Source: Schmidtea nova
Lineage: Eukaryota
Direction of reading: 5' to 3'
DNA: 64,000 bases
Assembly (NCBI GenBank): GCA_044892505.1
Contig: CM097884.1
Span: 144,770,001 to 144,834,000 of the forward strand
In this document: in pieces, positions 22,871 through 64,000 of the stretch
Layout: every line of letters begins with the position of its first letter
Numbering within the stretch: position 1 is the stretch's first letter
Made by a program: the position numbers and the translations under genes
The notes under the pieces: model-generated
Databases searched by the model: none
Told to the model about the DNA's origin: nothing
Seen by the model: only the letters and a program-made list of their open reading frames with translations

Positions 22871-23050
22871 TTATCCACCCGAGGGTGGGATCGGTTCTAG
22901 ATATTGCTCTAAATCTACTTTTCCGGATTTTACGTCATCCTTGAGTTTATCAACTGCTTGTTGCATCTTTTCCCTATGGACGGACGCGTAGTCCCCTGAA
23001 ACGAGAACGATTGCAGAAACAATTAGAAATAATAGAAAAACGAATTTCAT
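22871..23050 (-). CDS. Secreted peptide family member S1 (59 aa; absent from the supplied ORF track)
   Basis: MKFVFLLFLIVSAIVLVSGDYASVHREKMQQAVDKLKDDVKSGKVDLEQYLEPIPPSGG*; TATA box at 23094-23099; upstream region and 3' UTR match those of 63679-63942. Confidence 0.8.
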   Translation of the reverse strand: MKFVFLLFLIVSAIVLVSGDYASVHREKMQQAVDKLKDDVKSGKVDLEQYLEPIPPSGG

Positions 23051-23911
23051 TTTCTTTGAAAGTTAAATTAAGATTTCCGTAATTTTCCGCCAATTTATAC
23101 CGCAACCCTCTTTGTCCACTGGAAGGCAGAAATGGCGGACGGAACAGCTGGAGGGCTCTCAACGCATTTTGTAGTTGTTTCAAGGATCTCAAGCAATTGT
23201 CAAGTGCTTCCTTCTGGGTTCCGAATTGTTCTGAATTATTTAGCTGAAAAATAGAAATTGTAATTTTAATAAAAATAAAGTGAACAAATAATAATCACCT
23301 CACGTAGAATTTTTTTTTACTAATTCTCATGTAGAATTGCCGAATCCCTCTAGACTTATTGAAATAAAGGATTTCTACAAATCGTAGACGTTGAAGCGCC
23401 CAATATCAAAAGGTTCAACTTCCGAATTAGGAAAATGGAAAAGGCGACCAGTTGTAATGGTTAGAGGTTTTGTTTAGGGATACTTGATGGATGGCAGGGC
23501 TCATTTGCCAAAACTCCTTTCATTGAATATGATGGAAAGAAGATCTTAGACTTTTTCAATGGTACTCAAAGGTTTTATATGCAAAGAATATAGTTTTGTC
23601 TTTGGAGTGGTACGTATAGTGGCGTAGAAAGCGGAGGAATGGGGTGGCACAAAAGCACAGTTGCTTTGAATTACTCAATTCACAGGGTTCTTAAAATTAA
23701 AAAAATGGATGAATTTATTTATTTGAAAAAAAAGGTTTTTTTTTAAATTTTAGAGCTTAAATTTTATTTTTAAAATTTTTAACAAAAAACATTTAGAAAC
23801 AATTTTAAATTTAAAAAAATTTTAAACAGATTAACATCCAATGAAAAAGAAGATAATTCAATAAACAAGAAACAGTAGAATGAATGAAGATACCGGTTAT
23901 ATGACGAATTA

Positions 23912-23946
23912 GAGATTGACGAGGATTATTTTATAATCGAAAATTT
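23912..23946 (+). ncRNA. Hammerhead motif family A, copy with damaged stem I 3' strand
   Basis: GAGA-TTGACGA-G-GATTAT(TTT)ATAATC-GAA-AATT-T followed by tagt instead of tctc. Confidence 0.5.
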
Positions 23947-24246
23947 TAGTTTTGCAAATTAGTTTTGCAACAAAGGCTTATTTTGTTACTTNNNNNNNNN
24001 NNNNNNNNNNNNNNNNNNNNNNNNNNNNNNNNNNNNNNNNNNNNNNNNNNNNNNNNNNNNNNNNNNNNNNNNNNNNNNNNNNNNNNNNNNNNNNNNNNNN
24101 NNNNNNNNNNNNNNNNNNNNNNNNNNNNNNNNNNNNNNNNNNNNNNNNNNNNNNNNNNNNNNNNNNNTAGCAGCATTAAGTATTAAATTAATTAATAAAT
24201 AAGTAACAAAATAAGCCTTTGCTGCAAAAATATAATTTTATTAAAT

Positions 24247-24285
24247 GAGAAAATTTTCGATTATCAAATAATCCTCGTCAATCTC
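24247..24285 (-). ncRNA. Minimal hammerhead motif, family A (U3.G8); a head-to-head plus-strand copy with CTGACGA core lies at 24287-24321
   Basis: GAGA-TTGACGA-G-GATTAT(TTG)ATAATC-GAA-AATT-T-TCTC. Confidence 0.7.
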
Positions 24286-24380
24286 TCTGACGAGGATTAT
24301 TTGATAATCGAAAATTTTCTCATTTAATAAAATTATATTTTTGCAGCAAAGGCTTATTTTGTTACTTATTTATTAATTAA

Positions 24381-24429
<49 letters not shown>

Positions 24430-24843
24430 AAAATTATAATTATTAAAAATTCATTATTACCATTATTATTATTTTATCATTATAATTATGATTCTTAATA
24501 ATACAACAATAATATTAATATTTTTATTATTAGTTTTTTATTATTATTATTTTTTTATTAATATTAATATTATTATTATAATTAAAAATTTTTTTAAAAA
24601 TTATTATAATTATTATTAATACCATTATTACCATTATTATTATTTTTATTTTTAACATTACTATTAATCATTATTATTATTTTTCGTATTATTATTATTA
24701 TTATTATTAATATCATAATTATATTTTTTTCACCTTTGATCTTTTTCTATTATTATTATCAATAATTCTCATAATGACTATAGATCAAAAATTTTTTTTT
24801 AAACAATAACACAGTATTTCGGCACAGCCTTTATCAATTGTAC

Positions 24844-60734: not shown

Positions 60735-61258
60735 CAATCACATTGGCAGCATTTCTCTGTGACTCTATGGCAGCATTACTCTGTGACTCTCTATGGCAGC
60801 TCTCATAAATATTAACTGATACGATGCTTCTATTGTCAATAATTCTGCAATTTGTCACTCCGTAACGGCGTGCCAGTCTGCCACTGGTAGAAAGTGTTTG
60901 TCAGTTAATAATTGTTTTATACTTTCTCAAATATATAATTGTTTCTAACGGCTTCCAAATAAATTTTAATTTATTTATTGTTTAAATGCTCTTCAAGAAT
61001 TTATCGATTTTTGACGGAGAAATAAACATTATAAAAATATAAAATATTGTCGTAGGAAATTTATATTAATATATTATAATGCAATTAAAAAGCAGTAACC
61101 GTTACTACGCAATGTTGATCGCAATGGCATATTTCTATTACTAAAAAGCTCCTGATCACTTCAATAAGAATTCCTTTCAAATTGAATGTTCACGTCTTCA
61201 TGCATTTCTTTCTTTCCCTGAATTTTGATGGTTATATGAAAATTTAAACAAATTAAAA

Positions 61259-61684
61259 TTATTTTTTAAAACATCGCGATTTAATTTGATTTGAAGACGC
61301 GCCTTTCCCACTGCAATTAGCGCCGGGACGAGATCTAGGCGCTAACGCTGCTCCTGCATGGGACGCAGTATCGCAAGGCGCACAGTAACAATGATCAGAA
61401 ATGTTCGGATTTCCACTATTCATTATACAGTGTCGTGCGGGAGCTACCGCACTGCAAGCTGTTGATTGAAAAATTAACGAAATTGAGGATTGAATATTAT
61501 TCAAAATTGTATTAAATTCGACAAAGCCTTTTATAGAATTCGGATTGAAATATTTGATGGAATTGAGATTTGAGTTGTGGAACGAATAGGCCTGGTTGAG
61601 AGGCATTTCACTGTTGCTGCTTGTATTAGGAATGAAAGCATTGTATATTAATATTATTAAAACAAACTCGCTTTTATTATTCAA
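61259..61684 (-). CDS. Candidate secreted protein with a Cys-rich C-terminal half (141 aa)
   Basis: Hydrophobic FVLIILIYNAF near the N-terminus; Cys/Ala/Gly-rich C-terminal half with higher GC. Confidence 0.4.
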   Translation of the reverse strand: MNNKSEFVLIILIYNAFIPNTSSNSEMPLNQAYSFHNSNLNSIKYFNPNSIKGFVEFNTILNNIQSSISLIFQSTACSAVAPARHCIMNSGNPNISDHCYCAPCDTASHAGAALAPRSRPGANCSGKGASSNQIKSRCFKK

Positions 61685-61756
61685 TATACAATTGCTATAA
61701 TTAAAAAATATTAAATGGAACTGAATTAATATCAGTGTGGTTCAGCAGGTACAACA

Positions 61757-62950
61757 TTAGCCCCGCCGATGTAAACGGAGTGTATGTATGGAAGCGAGTT
61801 AGAGGATGTTCGGTGGTACTGAATCAATCTGGGTAATCGAGGTGGAAATCGCGTAGATCTTGAGGTTTGCGACGGGCGTGAAAACGTTGTGTGTGGTGGC
61901 ATTGGAGTAGGTTGTGAGTGGGTGTTTCCGATGATTTGATCGGTGAAGCCAGGATCTTCTGTGACGTCATCTAACATTGGGTGCGAAGGAGCACGAGAAT
62001 CTGACTCGTCTATTATGAATGCGGGTTGCAGGCAAGAAAGGTTGATGATGCGGGAAACTTCATTTATTTTGAGCTCGACTGTGTTCTTGAAAATCCTCAG
62101 TAACGTGGCTTCAGGTTGCTATGATCTGTGCATTGAAGCCATGCGTGAGACGCAGATGAAAGAGAAGCAGGTTGATATGGATTGTATAGAGAAGAATTAG
62201 TTAATGACGGGTTTGTATCGAAAGCAAGGAAATGGTTCCGAGCATCGTTGATTTGCTGCAGAGAGTACTCAGTATCAAGATCAATAATTTCCAACTGCAT
62301 CTTGGTGTTGCTGCCGAATAGCAGCTGTGAAGGAGAGACTTCCCTTGAACGATTCGATGTGTTGTACGTCTTCAGAAGAACGAAATGTAGTGACTTTGAC
62401 CAGCCGCCTGAAGTGGACAGGATGCGGGGTGAAGTTTTCATGGTACGGTGAGCTCGCTCTACGAGGCCATTCGTCTATGGGTGATAAGTGGAAGTACGTA
62501 AACGCTTTATGCCGAGTGTACGCGTGAGGTAGCTGAAAAGATTTGCCTCGAATTGGGTACCCTGGTCGGTGATGATGGATGAAGGAATTCTGTACATGAT
62601 GTCCGTAAAGCGTTAAAGGGGTTGAGCGGCATTCGTGAGACCGAAAGCTATGTAAAGGTACTCAAAGTTACCGAAAGCGGTTGTGACAGCGGTTTTCGGA
62701 ATGTCGTTTGTGTGTACAGGAAACTGATGAAACGCCTTTTCTAGGTAAATGGTGGAGAATTCAGTATTGCCAAAGAAACCTGAGATGATGTCCTTAATGA
62801 AGGGCATTGGTTAGTCGTCATGGATGGTAACACTGTTGAGCGGACGAAAGTCGCCGCAAGGACGGAATGAACCGTCTTCTTTTGTTATGACATGTATAGG
62901 AGAAGCCCAGACAGAACTCGCTTTTTATCCAAATTCCAGCAAGCAGGCTA
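61757..62950 (-). mobile_element. Decayed CsRn1-type Gypsy fragment: RT N-terminus joined directly to the integrase core
   Basis: WASPIHVITKEDGSFRPCGDFRPLN, KAFHQFPV..KTAVTTAFG, then SITDQGTQFE..HP*TNGLVER..SPSQLLFG; same family as 10294-10860. Confidence 0.85.
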
Positions 62951-63678
62951 GTCAGCATCATTAGTTTGTAGTTGCTCAATAGCAGCAGATGATCCAAGAA
63001 CGGTTTCTGAAGGCATTATTTTTGATGGTTCCGTTATGGTTTCTTTCTGTAACGGCACATAGGAACAGTCTGCAAGCACACTCGCACAGCGTTAATAACA
63101 AACATTTCCTTATATGAGTTATGCGTAATTGCGCACTAGTAGGCACAACGCGAATATAATTATCATATTAGGTTAATACATTTTTGCTATTACACTTAAA
63201 AGTTTCTATTATTATATTTTATTTTTTTTAAGTTGAAAAGGGTACCGGTGCGTGCCGTCACAAAAAAAGCTACGTATATATATTTATAAATAATATAACG
63301 TTTTTCACCTGATTGCGTATTTTAATTTTGCGCATTACGTTGAGTTAGCTTAATTGGCAAAATATTTTATGGAAATTTACGATTTGAGGAAATGTAAAAT
63401 GTGTTTGTTTGTATTTTACTTGTTATAAATGAAAACTAATATCCAGGATTTAGGGTCAACAATATAAGGAAAGCAACAAACATAGATTAGAAGCAGAGCG
63501 AAGGGCAACCACTTGTCAAGCATTTCACAATTGCTTGAGATCCTTGAAACCACTGCAGAATGTCTTGAGAACCCTCCAGCAGTTCAGTCCGCCACTTCTG
63601 CCTTCCAGTGGACAAAGCGGTTTGCGGTATAAATTGGCGGAAAATTACGGAAAAACTTAATTTTAACTTTCAAAGAAA

Positions 63679-63942
63679 ATGAAATTCGTTTTTCTATTAT
63701 TTCTAATTGTTTCTGCAATTGTTCTCTTTTCAGGGGACGTCGAGGGACGTACCAGAAGAGGTTCTCCGACGCATGAACTAGTGAAACAGGCGCCCGATCA
63801 TCCACCTGCGGACCACGATGATCATGCGGACCACGATGATCATGCGGACCACGATGATCATGCGGACCACGATGATCATGCGGACCACGATGATCATGAG
63901 GAACATGATGATCATGCGGATCCAGAACATCATGCACGATAA
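63679..63942 (+). CDS. Secreted peptide family member S3 (87 aa) with His/Asp-rich (ADHDDH)n repeats
   Basis: Signal MKFVFLLFLIVSAIVLFSGD, RTRR dibasic site, five exact-phase 18-bp repeats; TATA at 63628-63633. Confidence 0.85.
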   Translation: MKFVFLLFLIVSAIVLFSGDVEGRTRRGSPTHELVKQAPDHPPADHDDHADHDDHADHDDHADHDDHADHDDHEEHDDHADPEHHAR

Positions 63943-64000
63943 AATTATGAAACAGTAAAAAATAAATAAATAAATAATATTTCTTGTGCAATTGGTTTTT

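Follow-up and report, generated by a model that had tools for sequence, protein, structure and literature searches.

The stretch of DNA examined here, referred to throughout as the window, is 64,000 nt of the Schmidtea nova genome (assembly GCA_044892505.1, contig CM097884.1, positions 144,770,001 to 144,834,000, or C3:144770001-144834000 in our genome-wide searches, which covered 1,251,382,582 bases). It contains three small genes that are predicted to encode secreted peptides, S1 (22871-23050, minus strand), S2 (50903-51073, minus strand) and S3 (63679-63942, plus strand). All three are intact single-exon open reading frames (ORFs) that begin with a signal peptide of 19 residues and have a TATA box and poly(A) signals. 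An earlier sequence-only reading of the window had placed the genes at exactly these positions and described them as a hypervariable family in which unrelated mature peptides are held within a conserved promoter, signal peptide and 3' untranslated region (UTR). The genes and their conserved frame stand, and we find that S1, S2 and S3 are members of a small, lineage-specific and apparently undescribed family of eight secreted-peptide genes with three mutually unrelated kinds of cargo (the His/Asp repeat, that of S1 and that of S2). The description as hypervariable is not supported, since six of the eight members carry the same kind of cargo.

An eight-gene family with a shared promoter and signal peptide

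S1 and S3 can be aligned over 221 nt (23209-22991 against 63519-63739) at 92% identity, an interval that comprises ~160 nt 5' of the ATG together with the signal peptide, and a further block of 46 to 50 nt in the 3' UTR is 88% identical between them. The TATA core of S1, GGTATAAATTGGCGGAAAATTAC, is identical in S3 and L006 (another copy, introduced below), and the signal peptides of S1 and S3 agree at 19 of 20 residues (MKFVFLLFLIVSAIVL[V/F]SGD) behind an A-rich start context in both genes. The window contains exactly two copies of a 27-nt TATA motif and two of the opening 41 nt of the coding sequence, 100 shuffles contained none, and the 3' UTR of both genes is an A/T-rich block with poly(A)-signal-like motifs. 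The mature parts of S1 and S3 show no similarity above shuffled sequence, as the sequence-only reading held. S2 is likewise the distant member it was taken to be: its proximal promoter and signal region have ~69% nucleotide identity to those of S1, its TATA core stands 53 nt from the ATG (51-53 nt in the other members), it has FSGDV in common with them, and its cargo contains a KRRKR site.

Searched against the whole genome, the promoter and signal DNA of S1 was found at seven places with 92-100% identity, four of them on C3 (the loci L002, S1, S3 and L006, the S3 locus being L007) and three on C2 (L003, L004 and L005); we refer to these seven as the close copies. S2 DNA is unique in the genome save for weak matches to the C2 copies, and a six-frame genome search with the S2 protein found no other copy. 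A six-frame protein-profile search of the genome returned the same eight genes, all with open frames, followed by a next match at E = 2.8. A degenerate TATA-core pattern, run over the 1.25 Gb with no more than two mismatches, matched all eight genes plus two isolated sites, and an nhmmer profile of promoter and signal found no members beyond the eight in the window and ~150 kb of neighboring DNA (alternate 10-kb stretches around both clusters). The genes lie in two clusters, five on C3 (S2 and four close copies) within ~97 kb and three on C2 within ~42 kb, the latter including a convergent pair ~4 kb apart. Enumerating cargoes through the flanks and the signal across the genome therefore ends at eight members and three types.

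The flanks are of low copy number, with six genomic places for the distal upstream flank, eight for the downstream block and seven for promoter plus signal, and every one of these lies inside the two clusters. This distribution shows that the flanks are not a transposon, a possibility that the sequence-only reading had raised against itself.

The first 20 residues have 10 invariant positions across all eight members, and the signal peptide keeps one architecture throughout: MK is followed by a hydrophobic core of 15 residues, whose Kyte-Doolittle hydropathy averages 3.2-3.4, and by V/F-S-G ahead of Asp20, with small residues at -3 and -1 of a cleavage site that is itself a heuristic guess. The signal region is 97-100% identical at the nucleotide level among the seven close copies. 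The proximal promoter and 5' UTR are common to all eight members, and the 3' UTR block is present in the seven close copies and not in S2. The upstream homology of S3 and L006 to S1 and that of S2 to S1 begin at nearly the same point (23209 and 23218), ~110-120 nt 5' of the TATA core, which points to a compact shared promoter module; the sequences suggest that all eight genes may be expressed in the same cell type. At ~110 nt plus a TATA box, the module is a compact candidate for a cell-type-specific promoter, which could be useful where planarian transgene tools are scarce.

Runs of N are neither within nor abutting S1, S2 or S3 (777, 1126 and 6322 nt separate the genes from their nearest gaps), so assembly gaps have no bearing on the finding. 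Two such runs that are missing from the program-made gap list, at 56840-57193 inside the span from S1 to S3 and at 21307-21482 just before it, are near no family gene.

Several further observations concern the clusters and the promoter pattern. L003 and L004 (C2:319024804-319029077) form a tail-to-tail pair that is 95% identical over ~1.9 kb, an inverted duplication. Partial flank copies without an adjoining promoter or signal occur at C2:319050525-319050671, 319030654-319030790 and 319031840-319032011, and these look like remnants of further local duplications. With three mismatches allowed, the promoter-core pattern had 354 matches (175 for the control), mostly in one dispersed repeat with GATTTAATTTTGCGGAAAATTAT (e.g., C1:5959456-5959478) that is probably a transposon unrelated to the peptide genes.

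Three unrelated cargoes and the colinear S1 locus

The S1 locus was compared with the paralogous loci by local blastn of 21483-23750. In the direction of transcription, its features are as follows.

23219-23690, minus strand: distal upstream flank, homologous to L002-L005 (83-85% over 537-749 nt in local blastn; six genome places, all in the two clusters)
23102-23218, minus strand: proximal promoter module, common to all eight members, with 24% of columns variable among the seven close copies
23079-23101, minus strand: TATA-box core GGTATAAATTGGCGGAAAATTAC, the same in S3 and L006
22871-23050, minus strand: coding sequence of 59 amino acids plus stop, with signal residues 1-19, cleavage guessed at VSG|D and a mature 40-mer ending in Gly-Gly
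22873-22976, minus strand: S1-specific cargo of 104 nt; blast blocks end at 22977 and restart at 22872
22827-22872, minus strand: conserved 3' UTR block CAGTAAAAAATAA...TATTTCTTGTGCAATT, in which ATTAAA/AATAAT resemble poly(A) signals and which has 84-88% identity to each of the six genes of the His/Asp type
22515-22829, minus strand: downstream flank blocks, 22716-22829 (82-84%) and 22515-22688 (84-94%); eight genome places, all in the two clusters

Homology to the His/Asp-type loci runs colinearly from 23690 to 22515, or ~1.2 kb, and is interrupted only at the 104-nt cargo and at a downstream deletion of ~430 nt. Identity is 83-85% in ~640 nt of upstream flank (to L002-L005) and 92-98% in the proximal promoter and signal. 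The cargo begins exactly after the Ser-Val-His codons (22977), at a point where the paralogs have 141-272 nt, and the stop codon falls exactly at the start of the conserved 3' UTR block. The ~430 nt that follow this block in the other copies are missing in S1, which also has a 28-nt deletion upstream. Changes specific to S1 number 2 in 112 nt, 1 in 51 nt and 1 in 60 nt, so that its TATA core, 5' UTR, ATG context and signal are as well kept as those of the other copies.

The similarity of the S1 cargo to any His/Asp cargo is at the level of shuffles, for DNA on both strands and for protein in six frames, and lenient gapped global alignments gave nothing significant (best uncorrected p ~0.05 among 24 tests). 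The cargo has no second copy in the genome, either as DNA or as six-frame protein, and a short-word search of the paralogous loci and of the window found no source for it. Three specific origins were considered on this basis. A frameshifted His/Asp repeat was rejected with all six frames at shuffle level; leftover homology scrambled by indels gained no significant support from the 24 global alignments; and copying from the ~430 nt missing in S1, or from neighboring DNA, was rejected by the short-word search. A flank divergence of ~16% would leave a neutrally drifting cargo alignable, so that two histories are left for the S1 cargo: replacement in one discrete event, or indels and repeat loss that made it unrecognizable.

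S3 represents the common type, and its features in the window are these.

63507-63678, plus strand: proximal promoter, TATA core (63626-63648) and 5' UTR, by sequence homology to the family
63679-63942, plus strand: coding sequence of 87 amino acids plus stop, with signal peptide, RTRR site and His/Asp-rich polyanionic cargo
63807-63935, plus strand: 18-bp minisatellite TGCGGACCACGATGATCA encoding ADHDDH, 6.3 copies over 63807-63920, with 36- and 54-bp rows reaching 63935 (Tandem Repeats Finder, L007 1790-1918, 95% matches)
63951-64000, plus strand: conserved 3' UTR block, cut by the end of the window and complete in L007

Six of the eight members (L002-L006 and S3, that is, all but S1 and S2) carry this kind of cargo, which opens with [V/A]ESV[H/Y]HAPTHDLVKQAPDHP..., continues in His/Asp repeats and closes with ...PEHH[T/A]R. 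The six cargoes align throughout; what sets them apart is mainly the number of repeats, together with small indels. The (ADHDDH)n repeat stands at 6.3 copies in S3 and fewer in the paralogs, and L002 has a 45-bp higher-order unit in 4.1 copies and a tail that differs from those of the other His/Asp members. In S3 and L006, an indel patch of ~20 nt turns SVHHA into GRTRRGS and so makes an R-x-R-R site. S3 (L007:1662-1922) and L006 (1662-1886), ~30 kb apart, are 92-95% identical over 3.2 kb, yet they are two repeat units apart (87 versus 75 amino acids), from which it follows that repeat number shifts fast relative to point substitutions. The sequence-only reading had also entertained very fast evolution of the cargo; what the six His/Asp members show is gradual, alignable divergence, which that reading had itself named in advance as telling against it.

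The third cargo is that of S2.

51009-51245, minus strand: proximal promoter, TATA core (51104-51126, GGTATAAATTTGCTGAAAATTAC), 5' UTR and signal region; nhmmer E = 3.2e-56 against the family profile, of which S2 is one of the eight rows, and 69% identity to S1
50903-51073, minus strand: coding sequence of 56 amino acids plus stop, with signal MKLVLLSIMIIFAIALFSG|D and a Lys/Pro-rich cargo of net charge +7 containing the KRRKR site

No donor or silent cassette for the S2 cargo was found anywhere in the genome, and by its sequence S2 appears to be an older paralog with a third cargo type.

The three cargoes would give rise to rather different peptides. The mature S3 peptide of 68 residues is mostly a 6-amino-acid repeat and has 16 His, 25 Asp plus Glu and no Cys, and the His/Asp peptides as a group lack Cys, are 25-30% His and have net charges of about -14 to -20. 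Our guess is that they are disordered, strongly anionic molecules that chelate divalent metals (Zn, Cu, Ni) after release in mucus or in the secretion of a gland or of the gut, and they may be regarded as candidate metal chelators or components of a secretion. The mature 40-mer of S1 has a net charge of -2, and an AlphaFold2 model from the single sequence places residues 2-41 in a helix followed by coil, with a mean predicted local distance difference test score (pLDDT) of 69.7; on this model S1 could be a helical peptide and, with its C-terminal Gly, a candidate for amidation. Basic sites that might serve in processing are KRRKR in S2 and RTRR in S3 and L006; L002 has a KK pair inside the repeat only, and S1 and L003-L005 have none. 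S2 may accordingly be read as a cationic peptide released at KRRKR. Neuropeptide and prohormone precursors combine a signal peptide with peptides set between basic cleavage sites, many of them ending in a Gly that serves for amidation; the peptides described here have no similarity to any known family.

Probable duplication and payload turnover, and the alternatives

We consider it probable, though well short of settled, that this is an ordinary duplicated family in which promoter and signal have been conserved by descent and purifying selection, the payload has turned over through accidents at the level of DNA, with one replacement (S1), and the peptides have functions of the kinds suggested above. 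A unit of 1.2-1.7 kb would have been multiplied by local and segmental duplication into the two clusters, while the ~110-nt proximal promoter, the TATA box and the 19-residue signal would have been kept by common descent and by purifying selection, which would act on export and on expression in one and the same secretory cell type. The His/Asp payload would gain and lose units of its 18-bp coding minisatellite and acquire patches of small indels; S1 would have had its entire payload replaced, or altered past recognition, between sharp edges; and S2 would be an older paralog with a third payload. This account invokes no dedicated mechanism for changing payloads.

The pattern of variation among the seven close copies is consistent with such a history. 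In the proximal promoter 24% of columns vary, in the core and 5' UTR 20% and in the signal region 7%. The four variable sites in the 60 nt of the signal region, read from the alignment, comprise two synonymous and two conservative nonsynonymous changes, so that purifying selection on the signal peptide is enough and constraint at the nucleotide level need not be supposed. Variable sites mostly fit a single tree with the groups (S3, L006), (L003, L004, L005), L002 and S1, with few misfits.

A number of points weigh against this reading. The cargo comparison is made within one genome and without an outgroup, and it gives the cargo change no polarity. The open frame of S1 is modest evidence of function, as we estimate (rather than compute) that ~8% of random AT-rich stretches of 34 codons would stay open. 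The metal-binding proposal is drawn from composition alone, and Pfam returned nothing for S1 or S2 and only subthreshold compositional matches (Zip His-loop, YxzE) for S3. The hydrophobic moment of S1 is not above that of shuffles (p ~0.11), and the amphipathic character that the sequence-only reading saw in this peptide is not upheld. None of the six public sequencing runs with sequence of these genes (described below) is recorded as RNA. Finally, identity is 87-100% in the proximal promoter and signal as compared with 83-86% in the distal flanks, and the TATA core of S1 equals that of S3 though the distal flank of S1 groups with L002-L005, which makes some gene conversion possible. Conversion of the kind proposed for the Hessian fly SSSGP genes is compatible with ordinary duplication without being required by it.

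Carried further, the same observations would lead to concerted evolution, in which the members would be old paralogs with long-diverged cargoes, and short gene-conversion tracts would rehomogenize promoter, signal and 3' UTR and stop where cargo homology ends. Identity does peak in the signal (97-100%), remains high in the core and 5' UTR (87-98%) and falls to 83-86% distally; the TATA core of S1 is shared with S3 and L006 against the affinity of its distal upstream flank; a few variable sites fall off the single tree; and this is the model proposed for the closest known case, SSSGP (PMC2955719). We nevertheless regard it as unlikely. S1 homology runs ~640 nt upstream and ~300 nt downstream, far past the functional elements, which fits duplication of the whole locus at ~16% divergence better than short tracts; most variable sites do fit one tree; synonymous change in the signal (two of the four variable sites) is near the neutral expectation; and S2, at 69%, has not been homogenized.

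A second alternative concerns S1 alone, which could be a decaying duplicate of the His/Asp type whose 40-residue "mature peptide" is an accidental, functionless open frame. The 28-nt upstream and ~430-nt downstream deletions relative to the paralogs, a singleton cargo without relatives and the estimated ~8% chance of an open frame of this length in AT-rich DNA are all compatible with decay. The preserved TATA core, 5' UTR, ATG context and signal argue the other way, as does a stop codon placed exactly at the start of the 3' UTR block, and public sequence data bear on the question as well. Six public runs from one 2024 study (four samples, 265-350 million letters each) contain S1 and S3 sequence, the share of sampled words reaching 1.00 for S1 and lying at 0.77-0.84 for S3, and a transcript-sized stretch of S1 is present in full in the contigs of one small run and to 83% in those of another. 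Coverage of the genome in these runs is ~0.25x, yet the contigs hold both small genes, which suggests enriched libraries, either RNA sequencing (RNA-seq) or the assay for transposase-accessible chromatin (ATAC-seq); enrichment of either kind would point to active loci, in keeping with the account by ordinary duplication. The BioProject of the Schmidtea genome paper (PRJNA1052007) includes RNA-seq and ATAC-seq for S. nova (PMC11410931). We hold decay of S1 to be improbable.

We think about as little of the chances of a reading in which promoter and signal act as a secretion chassis and the S1 cargo, like the S2 cargo at an earlier time, is a de novo peptide that arose from nongenic or filler sequence between the signal and the old 3' UTR and is now functional, possibly amidated and helical. 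If true, it would be a dated, boundary-resolved birth of a peptide inside a duplicated planarian secretory gene.

The dedicated effector or defense cassette system that the sequence-only reading proposed, with unrelated cargoes actively swapped or hypermutated between fixed flanks, could draw on the three unrelated cargoes behind one promoter and signal module and on the sharp edges of the S1 replacement, one directly following the Ser-Val-His codons and the other coinciding with the first positions of the 3' UTR block. We judge it very improbable. There are only eight genes, six of them with one alignable cargo, and the close copies show a single replacement (S1). Neither the S1 cargo nor the S2 cargo has a donor or silent cassette in the genome. 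Inspection of the alignment by eye, with no repeat-finding program run on it, revealed neither recombination signals nor repeats at the edges of the replacement, and there is no other sign of a swapping mechanism. S2, having no 3' UTR block, is not framed by fixed flanks.

On the favored reading of ordinary duplication, S1 would offer one cleanly bounded payload replacement that is datable with sister Schmidtea genomes, and the family reveals no new genetic mechanism.

Relatives, comparable systems and surrounding DNA

Searches beyond this genome returned nothing that we regard as a relative. In a word search of a 5.8-billion-cluster index, S1 and S2 found no protein of comparable length with three shared 5-residue words. 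When a profile built from the signal and N-terminal alignment was run exhaustively with HMMER on 1.84 billion representative proteins, the single match was to 13 residues of a 1510-amino-acid protein (E = 2.4e-4), which we regard as noise. ESM Atlas yielded nothing usable for S1, S2 or S3, exact look-ups of S1 and S3 found no record, and literature searches by the repeat and signal strings and for planarian histidine-rich secreted proteins brought up nothing relevant. Such database blanks are weak evidence, as small eukaryotic ORFs often go uncalled.

Secreted His-rich proteins that bind metals include Plasmodium HRP2, with its AHHAHHAAD repeats, the histatins and histidine-rich glycoprotein, and a composition of this sort is typical of Zn, Cu, Ni or heme binding. 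The planarian His/Asp peptides resemble these proteins in their predicted secretion and in low-complexity tandem repeats of His with Asp/Ala spacers. They have no detectable homology to them (Pfam, Atlas, exhaustive profile), however, and are far more acidic (about -14 to -20).

A conserved signal peptide joined to divergent mature peptides is characteristic of frog preprodermaseptin-type precursors and of the conopeptide superfamilies, in which many amidated peptides end in Gly. Cargo variants number tens to hundreds in the frog and cone-snail families, whose multiexon genes have a conserved propiece and undergo hypermutation of an alignable mature exon. The planarian family, in contrast, has three kinds of cargo, no propiece and no Cys framework, and no homology to either, although S1 ends in Gly as many of their amidated peptides do. 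A frog example appears in PMC13128954.

Among the seven SSSGP-1 genes of the Hessian fly, the gall midge Mayetiola destructor, the mature region is highly diversified in six, and positive selection was measured (Chen et al. 2010, PMC2955719). The planarian family is like the SSSGP type in its conserved promoter and UTRs and in the clustering of its genes, and the inverted duplication of L003 and L004 is a likeness to the Hessian fly SSSGP-1 cluster. It differs in having one cargo in six of eight members, divergence mainly by repeat number and indels, no intron and a free-living animal rather than a plant parasite; there is also no sequence similarity between the two, and the planarian genes are known here from DNA. 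Unlike families of the SSSGP, conopeptide and preprodermaseptin kind, it has not diversified the mature region in most of its members. We therefore see in it a modest flatworm example of the pattern known from gall-midge SSSGPs, frog skin peptides and conopeptides.

Rfam and transfer RNA (tRNA) scans gave no match. The DNA around the genes in the window is mostly transposon debris, and transposon ORFs lie among the peptide genes at 11237-12664, 15985-16962 and 31153-34451 (all on the minus strand), with Pfam matches to a hAT dimerization domain, an integrase, a Ty3/gypsy reverse transcriptase-RNase H-integrase and a DUF7041 gag-like domain.

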